A DNA stretch of 63,547 nt, the filler included, from Hyphochytrium catenoides (taxonomy: Eukaryota; Protista; Hyphochytriomycota), in NCBI GenBank assembly GCA_900088475.1. It is 9 parts of 9 records of this genome, joined end to end, with 100 filler letters (N's around TTAATTAATTAA, not from the genome) between each part and the next. Parts side by side here need not be neighbours in the genome. Positions count along the whole stretch, not along the records: positions 1 to 30,159 come from FLMG01001750.1; 8 more parts are not named here. One strand, given 5' to 3'. Shown one piece after another: positions 10,301-13,141 of this stretch (the first letter of the stretch is position 1; every line of letters starts with the position of its first letter). The position numbers and the translations under genes are program-made. The notes below the pieces were generated by a model that saw nothing but the letters and a program-made list of their open reading frames with translations, was not told where the DNA came from and did no database searches.

Positions 10301-13141
10301 ATCTTCTATTCTCCACTTATACGCAGCCTATTTGCTCTGCCATGTTCTACTTCCAACGTCTCTTGTTTCTTCAGTTCCTTTGTATGCTTGTCTCTCTTTC
10401 CTGTATTGTTACTTATTCAACTGGCCATCGCTTGTCAGATATACGTGCACAGCAAGGTCATGATTGTGGATGACTCGAAGGTCATTATCGGCTCTGCCAA
10501 CATCAATGATCGCAGCATGAACGGCGACCGGTAAGCAGCACCATGCGCAAGTTTGCCATCCGCTCTCTCTTTCTCTGCATTTTAGAAAAGCAACTGAAGA
10601 TTTGATCTTTTCTGTATAGGACCTTCTAGCGGTACCTATATGTCATCCTCACGTTCGCTAATGTCGGCATGTCGTGATCCTCTTTGTCTCCTAATCTTGC
10701 AGGGACAGTGAGATCGCTCTGCTAATGGAAGATCGGATGTTAGTCGACTCTTTGATGGCGGGCCAACCTGTTAGGGTCGGAAAGCTAGGACAAGAGTTGC
10801 GGATCAAGCTTATGGCGGAGCATTTGGGCCTAGAGTTGGTTAGCAAGTTGACTTTCCAGGATTCGGCTACTCCTCTTCCTCTTTACCTCCTCGTTGACGA
10901 TGCGACTCTTAATAGAATTGCTAATGATTCTTTTGCTAGGTTCCGTCCACAACGGAGAAGCTTGCCGATATCATCGCCACTTCTACCTGGGGCTGGGTTT
11001 CTTCTGTGGCTAAGGTCAATACGATCATCTACGATGATGTCTTCCGCTGTATCCCCGCGGACCACATCCGACAGTTTAAGGACCTTGGAATCTTCAGTCC
11101 CACGCTGGTCAGATGAAATCCCGTGTTTTAATGAGAATGGAGGATAGATAAGAAGATGTCACTCTGATCAATGATAGGAAATGAGCGAAGAGATAGGGAG
11201 ATAATTTTGAACGTGTTCTTCAAGATGATAGCCTTGCAACTGATCTCTCTATCTCCCTCTCTGCCTCTTTGTCTCTCTCTCGCTCTTTCAGATCTACGAA
11301 CACCAACGAATGGCTGTAAATGTCCGAGATGTGTCCCTTTGGGCTGCTGAGAACCTGAAAGATGACGATCCAAAACCTTGGACAGACAGTGCGGGGAAGG
11401 AGATCTCCGGAGACACCATAGACCTCAGTCAATGGAAGGTAAGGGTACGACCTGTCACGACGTGCAAATGCATCCTCCTAAACTCCAAGGAAGAGAATAA
11501 GGGCATTAAAAGAGGTCGGAGGGAAGCATTGGAATCGGTAGAAAGAACGAACAGCTTACGAAGAGCTTGCGCAGAGCTTACATCACTCCCCTCTTTCCCT
11601 ACTTCCACTCATATTCCTGCTCTTCTCTCTCCATAAATGTCCCGATAGGTAGCGCCACCTGATTCCAAAGTCCTCTTCCTTCCGCGAGACAAGGAAGGCT
11701 GGTGCTATGCGCCAGATTTCAAAACATTCTCTCTTGCAGACGTCATGGCATTGAAGGAGCAGTGTGGAGACCTCTCTCGCAAAGAGAGGCTGAAATGGTT
11801 CTTGACTCACCAGCGTTGGTTAGCAGTAGTTAGAAGAAGAGTTTGGATCAAGAAAGGAGAGCTCGAGGGCGAGGAAGGGATGGAGGAGGCCAGAACTTCC
11901 TATGGTATGGTAGATCCTCCACGTCCCATACTATTAGAAGTACAGTGAATGTTCAAAGATGCCCCTGCTCTTTCTGACCGGACCTGTCTGACCTAGCTGG
12001 GAAGCCTTTAGCTCGTCAGGCTTCTCCTTCGCTACCATGTTCTCCATACCATATTTACCGTTAACCTGGTCTTTGCTTGTAGATGTTCTGGGTAGTCCAC
12101 GAGAAAGCTCGGAGGGCTTCATTTTCACGACATCCCCCAACATGACAGGTACGTGGCTATGATCATGAGATCATTCTTGTAGCCAGCAACACCAATGTCC
12201 TCCTTCTGCATTCATTACTGAAGATCTTCTCCCATATACATTCTGACAATAACCACGCTTGCCTCCGCCAGGGCGTGGTGTCGAAGGCAGCTCTTCTGCA
12301 TACACTCTGGGGCCGCAAACAAGCTCCGGGAGCTTCCGCCTCCCAAATGGTACGAACATATCGTTGTTTTTGGGGTCTGGGACACTGCATTGGCTTCCTG
12401 CAAGTAGTAGATGGTCCTGATTTGGCTCTTGTTGTTGTCAGGGCAACTTTACGTGGTTCATGGCCTACAAGCAGACAGAGAAAGAGGGAGACAGATTGAG
12501 AGAGAAAGCGAGCGCTCGGAGTCCGAGGCATCTCTCGCCAGCTCGATTGTAAGTACCTGGAGAAAGTTATACCCGCAGCGAAGCAGTGGTGCAGCAACCG
12601 AGAGCCTTCATCGCAGGGTGAGAGTTATACACATATCCGAATGCTCGTTTCTATCTTGACAGCGCGTTGCATATTGAAGTTCAATGGCTGGCTAATAGCT
12701 GCCCGGGACTTACGCTAATCTTTCTGGCATCTCTGTTCAGTTCCATCGATCCATAAGTGGTACCACCACTATGTCTTCCTTTGTTTTTTTGGCTTAAAGA
12801 GCCTCATTTTCCAACGCCTGTGTGTGATGCTTCTTAGGTCTTTGGCTAGTTGTTTATGCTGAGCACCAATCTCTTCGTTCCTTCAGCCATTTTTGCAGTC
12901 ATCTGCTAGTCGCTATCTGGACGGTGAGTTGGATTCTGACATGGAGCAACACAGACCATCTTCGCCTTCCTCTGTGCTGCGTGAGAGCCTCTTTCCCGCC
13001 GTTCGCAGTGGTAGAGGGGAGGCAGTAGGTGTCGTCTACCGCCTGAGAGGCATTCAAGGGCACCTGGTGCAATTTCCTCTCAATTTTCTTGCAGACGAGA
13101 AGCTTCGTCCCGCTTATCTGCCTAAGAGTCTGCACATGTAG
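1357..13141 (+). CDS. PLD: Transmembrane PX/PH phospholipase D (PXTM-PLD-like), roughly 28-30 exons, with a C-terminal DysF insertion
   Basis: Spliced at GT-AG sites. PX-like exons (2230-2361 VFCGSNSWSIVVTRSGILRLYL; ~3109-3250 SETLLSFLGFSRHRFSDRFGP). PH-like strands GYWLVVRSSSVSLY..HVFLLDGELK and PHGLEVKSRSAALEVDF. Then RFGSYSP and KWLVDGKETF..AQKEILIAGWWLCPDVYLERP. HKD1 WSHHEKIVVIDQQIAFIGG|LDLCFGRYD (~7900-8110); WPGKDYSNP; VPRLPWHDVH; IETAQHYIYI|ENQFF. HKD2 [31 protein letters not shown]|DSE (~10440-10710). C-terminus RLRGIQGHLVQFPLNFLADEKLRP..HM*. The 5' start and the luminal-domain exons are less certain. Confidence 0.95.

Follow-up and report, generated by a model that had tools for sequence, protein, structure and literature searches.

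The DNA considered here, referred to below as the window, is a stretch of 63,547 nucleotides, filler included, from Hyphochytrium catenoides (assembly GCA_900088475.1), and the locus in question is a phospholipase D (PLD) gene that appears to carry, close to its 3' end, two exons encoding a domain of the DysF family. On the plus strand, from about 6512 to 13141, a single gene is divided into a dozen or more exons, the pieces of which yield a complete PLD catalytic domain. Two H-x-K-x4-D catalytic motifs are present, both of them within matches to Pfam PLDc: HKD1 on piece 7798–7965 (E 5.2e-7) and HKD2 at 10451–10534 (E 1.8e-6). Further pieces along the same strand read LPWHDVHC…, HYIYIG / NQFFVSG and EPFRVIVVMPLLP, and the motifs IGSANIN and NQFF can be found among them. 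The activity of PLD enzymes requires two conserved C-terminal blocks, IYD.VFRC.P and VQFP..FL, and both are present in the gene. Block A (NTIIYDDVFRCIPADHI, 10943–11107) aligns to residues 515–544 of human PLD1 (6u8z) and 554–582 of human PLD2 (6ohm), and the C-terminal VQFPLNFL block (RLRGIQGHLVQFPLNFL) aligns to residues 603–626 of PLD2 and 563–590 of PLD1 in the same structures; the last PLD piece, RLRGIQGHLVQFPLNFLADEKLRPAYLPKSLHM, is followed by a stop codon at 13139–13141. Human PLD1 and PLD2 (6U8Z, 6OHM) and the PXPH PLDs of plants and oomycetes share the two HKDs, IGSANIN, NQFF and VQFP..FL with the window gene. Judged by its sequence, the host gene is an intron-rich eukaryotic two-HKD PLD of the PLD1/PLD2/PLD-zeta type.

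Human PLDs target lipids with N-terminal PX and PH domains, whereas the first open reading frame (ORF) of the window gene (6512–7339, 275 residues) has a single hydrophobic segment at its N-terminal end and, when this ORF was searched, matched no Pfam family, PX and PH included. A preliminary description of the locus had suggested that its architecture might already be annotated among the oomycete PXTM-PLDs. This suggestion is unlikely to hold because the PLD genes of Phytophthora have 0–1 introns, with no DysF described (PMC3056787), against a dozen or more exons here; the single hydrophobic N-terminal segment and the lack of a PX match in the first ORF also set the gene apart from PXTM-PLDs and TM-PLDs. 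At the other end of the gene, the last exon can start at 12887 (phase 0), 12899 (phase 0) or 13009 (phase 2).

The two exons of interest lie between the conserved C-terminal blocks. In human PLD1 and PLD2 these blocks are separated by only about 18–20 residues (6u8z 545–562; 6ohm 583–602), whereas in the window they are about 1.9 kb apart and enclose candidate coding sequence of 190 codons or more. Thus, the two exons appear to have been inserted close to the PLD C-terminus, in a loop that is otherwise short. The plus-strand segment 11292–11438 translates to IYEHQRMAVNVRDVSLWAAENLKDDDPKPWTDSAGKEISGDTIDLSQWK, and the segment 11649–11906 translates to VAPPDSKVLFLPRDKEGWCYAPDFKTFSLADVMALKEQCGDLSRKERLKWFLTHQRWLAVVRRRVWIKKGELEGEEGMEEARTSYG, which opens with VAPPDSKVLFLPRDKEGWCYAPDF and holds VVRRRVWIKK. 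The preliminary description had proposed exons at 11292–11438 and 11649–11904, placed between the PLD blocks, and in both respects it was accurate: the translations are as given, splice signals are visible, and block A (10943–11107) and the C-terminal block (13034–13138) align to the human enzymes on either side. Exon 1 is preceded by a long pyrimidine tract and an acceptor at 11292 (cag/ATC) and ends at a donor at 11438/11439 (AAG/gtaagg); exon 2 follows an acceptor at 11649 (atag/GTA) and can end at a donor at 11904/11905 (G/gtatgg). Possible GT donors of exon 2 are found after 11904 (phase 1), 11909 (phase 0), 11939 (phase 0) and 11944 (phase 2). The open frame upstream of YEHQR, the motif with which the N-terminal part of the DysF signature begins right at the acceptor, has no in-frame ATG; thus, 11292–11438 would be an internal exon that needs an exon upstream.

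The DysF assignment was examined with a hidden Markov model (HMM) of 21 metagenomic DysF domains, which was compared with all 1164 stop-to-stop six-frame pieces of the window. Piece 11649–11945 ranked first (E 4.5e-7, 26.5 bits, profile positions 64–97) and piece 11244–11633 ranked second (E 0.034, 10.9 bits, profile positions 2–41), with the third-ranked piece at 5 bits (E 2.3). The top two pieces share a strand, are separated by 210 nt and are colinear, the N-half of one domain being followed by its C-half. When A1, a 19-sequence alignment of complete metagenomic DysF domains, was aligned to the exons with hhalign, exon 2 matched columns 63–97 (probability 95.8%, E 7.2e-9) and exon 1 matched columns 3–33 (E 3.7e-4). 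In a feature search of the ESM Atlas, the top three neighbors of exon 2 were Peroxin/Ferlin (PF06398) clusters, which serve as a lead only; the same search with exon 1 returned no informative neighbor. Homology of the insert to DysF domains, as a divergent member of the family, is well supported by these comparisons together with the shuffling of exon 1 described below, and the preliminary description had made the same assignment from the conserved motifs.

The profile behind these comparisons was obtained by scanning a metagenome collection with the back-translated pattern D-x-E-G-W-x-Y-A-x-D-F, which returned 115 loci; viral contigs scanned for the DysF pattern gave 0. Most of the 115 loci carry the ordered signature YENQR … LPTDR..WSD..G … W.W…W.vD … D.EGW.YA.DF … VRRRRW.R in one frame. 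With the retrieval motif masked, 68 of the 115 keep a DysF HMM match at E<1e-3, and those that do not are mostly truncated or belong to a divergent subfamily, with 8 of the 115 being clearly unrelated bacterial proteins. All eight parent ORFs that were tested score above the cutoff of Pfam PF06398, in matches to profile positions of about 240–358, and their architectures include TECPR1-like, Hobbit-family, C2-containing and multi-DysF proteins. The A1 profile also matches solved DysF structures, those of TECPR1 (8p5p, 2.3e-29), myoferlin and dysferlin (4cah/2k2o). The PF06398 matches of the parent proteins and the matches to solved structures together validate A1 as a profile of DysF domains.

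A distinct DysF-like subfamily was met in the same collection. It comprises proteins of about 350 residues from aquatic metagenomes (loci L002, L005, L016, L035, L040, L042, L049, L059, L062, L077, L081, L089, L096–L098, L101, L107 and L111) that have VFEHE for YENQR, IDYSLxGIDAEGWTYAYDF and YVRRRKWRY, and its members score weakly against the canonical profile once the motif is masked.

Several observations weigh against the view that the PLD carries a working DysF domain, and they concern the detection of the domain, its sequence and its place in the messenger RNA. With regard to detection, the profile was fished with exon 2's own motif, and part of the exon 2 score is therefore built in. Because the retrieval motif came from exon 2, the independent parts of the insert were checked separately. 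Exon 1 alone scores 11.4 bits; its score in the window search was 10.9 bits, and 2000 shuffles gave at most 10.4. In exon 2 with the motif masked, VVRRRVWIKK aligns to profile positions 82–97 at 8.1 bits, the maximum of about 2000 shuffles being 8.2. Chance resemblance is negligible because three independent matches are colinear. A reading in which the resemblance is accidental, or in which an assembly chimera has put DysF exons inside a PLD gene, draws on the fact that the observation comes from one genome; it is very improbable given that the three matches lie on one strand within 600 nt and make up the top two of 1164 pieces. The assembly also argues against a chimera, for there are no runs of N near the PLD locus (the sole internal gap is at 28981–28991), composition is even across the region in a window of about 50% GC, and the splice phases of the insert fit those of the PLD exons.

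A second point on detection is that Pfam, PF06398 included, gave no match to exon 1 or exon 2 when they were searched singly, nor did a phmmer search of the PDB with either exon. Complete and genuine DysF domains score just 33–45 bits against PF06398; exons that hold half a domain are thus expected to fall below the Pfam filters. Furthermore, an exhaustive HMMER search of 1.84 billion protein representatives with exon 2 found no close relative, and with it no orthologue that would show the insert to be conserved. The lone match in that search (P0001, E 4.7e-4) is a PAN-repeat kinase in which five repeats sum small scores, and it was rejected as spurious.

The insert itself is a mixture of conserved and degenerate elements. 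The N-terminal strand motif Y-E-N-Q-R opens exon 1 as YEHQR, where H stands in place of N (profile columns 3–8), and the motif L-P-T-D-R-x-x-W-S-D-x-x-G aligns to LKDDDPKPWTDSAGK, where it is kept as D.P.W(T)D..G. The motif D-x-E-G-W-x-Y-A-x-D-F, which is diagnostic, as the majority of the 115 loci with this motif are DysF domains, appears as DKEGWCYAPDF, and the strand V-R-R-R-x-W-x-R appears as VVRRRVWIKK with its three arginines and tryptophan kept. By contrast, the W-x-W-x3-W triad is not conserved: one of the three tryptophans is left (SQWK). The segment in which it lies is interrupted by the intron and is of normal length, with 27 residues against about 32. Of the four stacking arginines, the distal two are also lost, being K and G. 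In the DysF fold, a loop with stacked Trp and Arg wraps around two long antiparallel strands at the termini; in TECPR1, W116/W118/W122 plus W138 stack on R159/161/165/167 (PMC10476172). A stretch of 36 residues separates YAPDF from VVRRRVW, and a single-sequence AlphaFold prediction of exon 2 alone has low confidence (pLDDT, the predicted local distance difference test, of 58) and renders this stretch mostly helical.

These departures bear on a reading in which the insert, although derived from a DysF domain, has lost its fold and function and persists as a decayed, tolerated loop with no role in lipid binding. The loss of two of the three triad tryptophans and of two stacking arginines, the long loop before VRRRVW, the blank Pfam and PDB searches with single exons and the want of a conserved orthologue among the 1.84 billion representatives would all agree with such decay. 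The frame, however, is open, and the strand motifs YEHQR, EGWCYAPDF and VVRRRVW are kept together with WTD..G. Both finger-tip stretches retain aromatic and basic residues, the tryptophan at the position of W154 included, and insertions of 25–32 residues at the same point as the 36 of the window are found in bona fide DysF domains of the metagenomic set (L064, L037 and L004). Decay is accordingly quite unlikely in our estimation.

Two of these metagenomic proteins are also of note for their composition: L064:3-3404:+ has three DysF stretches, and L037:2-3865:- has a C2 domain and two DysF stretches. Within the metagenomic set, exon 2 is most closely related to the third DysF of L064 (phmmer 4.4e-5), which likewise contains EGWCYA and, ahead of VRRRRW, a long insertion.

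As for the messenger RNA, splice sites, phases and codon usage suggest that the two exons would be spliced in frame into the PLD transcript. The exon with block A ends in phase 0 at 11107 and exon 1 is in phase 0 at both ends, which makes the join compatible. With a codon-frame log-odds score that had the 484 codons of 12 PLD exon cores as its training set, the proposed frame scores +19.2 bits for exon 1 and +6.0 bits for exon 2, with the other frames negative. In a leave-one-out control, all 12 of the PLD exon cores are positive (+4 to +25 bits), and the intron between the DysF exons and the intron upstream of them are negative in all frames. On the opposite side, the frame is likewise preserved if both DysF exons are skipped (11107 to 12887 or 12899), and between 11905 and about 13000 several in-frame joins fit; a sliding coding score over 11900–13000 is too noisy to settle the 3' exon chain.

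The DysF-type exons could, alternatively, stand outside the main PLD protein, either as a usually skipped cassette or as a separate or nested transcript in the last PLD intron. Skipping would keep the frame, since phase 0 is shared by the end of the block A exon and by the last-exon acceptors at 12887 and 12899, and the skipped form would have a loop nearer in length to the short loop of the human enzymes. The DysF motif, on the other hand, starts at an acceptor without an upstream ATG, and the nearest upstream exon on the same strand is a PLD exon of compatible phase. The codon usage of the DysF exons fits that of the PLD exons, and nested genes on the same strand are rare. This alternative is therefore judged unlikely. 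Within the same interval, candidate exons at 12083–12148 and 12272–12349, proposed from phase logic, have consistent phases and negative codon-frame scores, and they were rejected. On the way from DysF exon 2 to the last PLD exon, a short stop-free stretch at 12500–12590 (plus strand, frame of 12500) has a high local codon-frame score (+13 bits for 25 codons), which could reflect either one more small exon or noise. The features of the locus are collected in Table 1.

Table 1. Coordinates, in window positions, of the features recognised in the PLD gene and its DysF-type insert.
Feature	Position	Strand	Remarks
First recognisable coding ORF: hydrophobic N-terminus MFYCLVSCIIGLLATILLELLLTYIGL, low-complexity linker, catalytic-domain start KKAFSALKWLVDGKETF...VYLERPAG	6512..7279	+	3' boundary approximate
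HKD1 exon core (…GFWSHHEKIVVIDQQIAFIGG)	7831..7956	+	Pfam PLDc
HKD2 exon core	10436..10531	+	Pfam PLDc
PLD exon with conserved block A (…NTIIYDDVFRCIPADHIRQFKDLGIFSPTL)	10943..11107	+	Phase 0 end, GT at 11108 (CTG/GTCAGA)
Putative DysF exon 1, N-half: YEHQR … DDPKPWTDSAGK …	11292..11438	+	49 codons, phase 0 both ends
Intron dividing the putative DysF domain	11439..11648	+	210 nt, GT…AG, in-frame stop 11634–11636, codon-frame score negative in all frames
Putative DysF exon 2, C-half: DKEGWCYAPDF, 36-residue insertion, VVRRRVWIKK	11649..11904	+	3' end uncertain
PLD C-terminal conserved block (VYRLRGIQGHLVQFPLNFLADEKLRPAYLPKSLHM) and stop codon	13034..13141	+	Alignment to PLD2 6ohm

The explanation we favor, and regard as fairly probable, is that the PLD has gained a two-exon cassette encoding a divergent DysF finger in a C-terminal surface loop, where it would dock the catalytic domain on a membrane. 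Both exons would be joined in frame into the PLD messenger RNA, and the segment they encode would fold as a DysF-like beta finger, as profile homology suggests in spite of the degenerate tryptophan triad. The tip of the finger would then anchor the catalytic domain at one particular membrane or patch of lipid. The lipid-binding properties of known DysF domains give this proposal its shape. The DysF domain of Pex30 binds phosphatidic acid (PMC12101077, PMC12101078) through two membrane-inserting stretches, one just after beta-1 and the other just before beta-6, the first of which has two arginines and a hydrophobic run flanked by tryptophan (PMC12101077). The N-terminal DysF of TECPR1 binds sphingomyelin, with contacts at the same finger tip (R76/W77, L88/L89, I142/D143 and K152/K153/W154; PMC10476172). 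Both of these lipid specificities had been stated correctly in the preliminary description. In the window insert, the corresponding tip stretches directly follow YEHQR (MAVNV…SLW) and directly precede VRRRVW (RLKWFLTHQRWLAV); each is of hydrophobic, aromatic and basic character. The tryptophan four residues before VRRR and the basic arginine beside it are at the positions of W154, which inserts into the membrane in TECPR1, and K153.

By analogy with these domains, we infer that the insert may act as a membrane-docking finger beside the PLD C-terminal segment, in an enzyme that seemingly has neither PX nor PH. The DysF would take over the role played by PX and PH domains in other PLDs. Product-dependent retention, or positive feedback at sites rich in phosphatidic acid, can be added as speculation; feedback by phosphatidic acid is the most attractive version because several DysF domains bind this lipid, which is the product of PLD. 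A stronger form of the proposal, which we put forward as a doubtful though conceivable extension, is that the gene is a natural "Rosetta-stone" fusion in which an enzyme that makes phosphatidic acid carries in cis a DysF finger that reads it. The insert would then be the first DysF embedded in a catalytic domain and would confer self-reinforcing, product-gated activity at particular membrane sites.

Known DysF proteins resemble the window gene in part. The N-terminal DysF of TECPR1 (PDB 8P5P) has the ordered motifs YENQR, WSD..G, D.EGW.YA.DF and VRRRxW, all of which have counterparts in the window. Among its individual residues, R76, D143, K153 (as R) and W154 have counterparts, whereas W77, L89, I142 and K152 have none, a single tryptophan is left of the W116/W118/W122 triad and about 13 residues before VRRR become 36. 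The hosts also differ, since TECPR1 is a tectonin-propeller adaptor of ATG5–ATG12 and the window gene encodes an enzyme. Binding of sphingomyelin is peculiar to the N-terminal DysF of TECPR1 even among mammalian DysF domains (PMC10476172). The DysF of Pex30/Pex24p, which forms the C-terminal part of PF06398, belongs to the same family as the insert by way of the profile, and at both places where Pex30 has its stretches that bind phosphatidic acid (PMC12101077) the window has hydrophobic, aromatic and basic residues. Pex30, however, is a reticulon-homology membrane protein of the endoplasmic reticulum without a catalytic domain, whereas the host in the window is a PLD. The inner DysF domains of dysferlin and myoferlin (4CAH, 2K2O) are matched by the same profile and share a nested domain-in-domain arrangement; in ferlins one DysF is nested in another DysF, and in the window a DysF would be nested in a loop of the PLD catalytic domain. 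A pairing of DysF with PLD is also known from yeast, where the DysF-only protein Spo73 and the PLD Spo14 take part in the same process of prospore membrane growth (PMC4863634). In yeast the two are separate proteins with no direct coupling shown, whereas in the window they are apparently fused in one gene.

Both component families, the HKD PLDs and the DysF domain, are known, and it is their combination that is unusual. The preliminary description named no characterised PLD of this architecture, and among the papers searched none was found that describes DysF, or a "dysferlin domain", together with PLD in one protein. A survey of oomycete PLDs does not give DysF among their domains (PMC3056787), and none of the 115 metagenomic DysF loci has an HKD or PLD C-terminal motif. 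A word-index protein search with exon 2 returned no candidate within a length window that excluded full-length PLDs; other PLD–DysF fusions may therefore exist. On present sequence evidence, the PLD–DysF gene represents a real and probably new domain architecture, for which we infer a function in membrane docking.

For a long time no function was known for DysF domains, and their binding of lipids was established only in 2023–2025, for sphingomyelin (TECPR1) and for phosphatidic acid (Pex30 and relatives, dysferlin). If the proposed architecture is correct, a DysF fused to an enzyme that produces phosphatidic acid would constitute gene-fusion evidence for a functional link between DysF and this lipid. 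It would also reveal a new mode of PLD regulation or targeting, in which a lipid-binding domain sits beside the C-terminal segment, a part that PLD1 and PLD2 conserve, instead of an N-terminal PX/PH or C2 domain. The gene would likewise be a compact natural system for studying the steering of an enzyme on membranes by a DysF finger.

Other DysF architectures were seen among the metagenomic loci. In L054:4911-8231:-, a DysF lies at the N-terminal end of the C-terminal region of a protein of the Hobbit/FMP27 family (bridge-like lipid transfer proteins), which is another link between DysF and lipid handling. In L026:476-3409:+, a TECPR1-like ORF combines a galectin domain (Gal-bind_lectin 2e-31) with a DysF and tectonin/Hyd_WA propeller repeats, and it may be a single protein that reads both glycan and lipid damage signals.

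Elsewhere in the window, a search of Rfam returned no match. The start of a plus-strand ORF at 15850–16398 weakly matches Bromo_TP (a bromodomain-associated, TAF8-like histone fold; E 7.6e-4, which is below the Pfam cutoff). The window also holds 25 CT/GA dinucleotide repeats with 6 or more units each, at 1–4700, 9950–10020 and 28100–29030, which give rise to long "SLSLSL" or "ERERER" pseudo-ORFs on both strands; the 11-N gap at 28981–28991 lies inside one such repeat. Finally, a plus-strand ORF of 133 residues at 22608–23009 has a clear RING finger (zf-C3HC4 4.7e-12, zf-RING_2 9e-12) and is probably the first exon of a gene for an E3 ubiquitin ligase.

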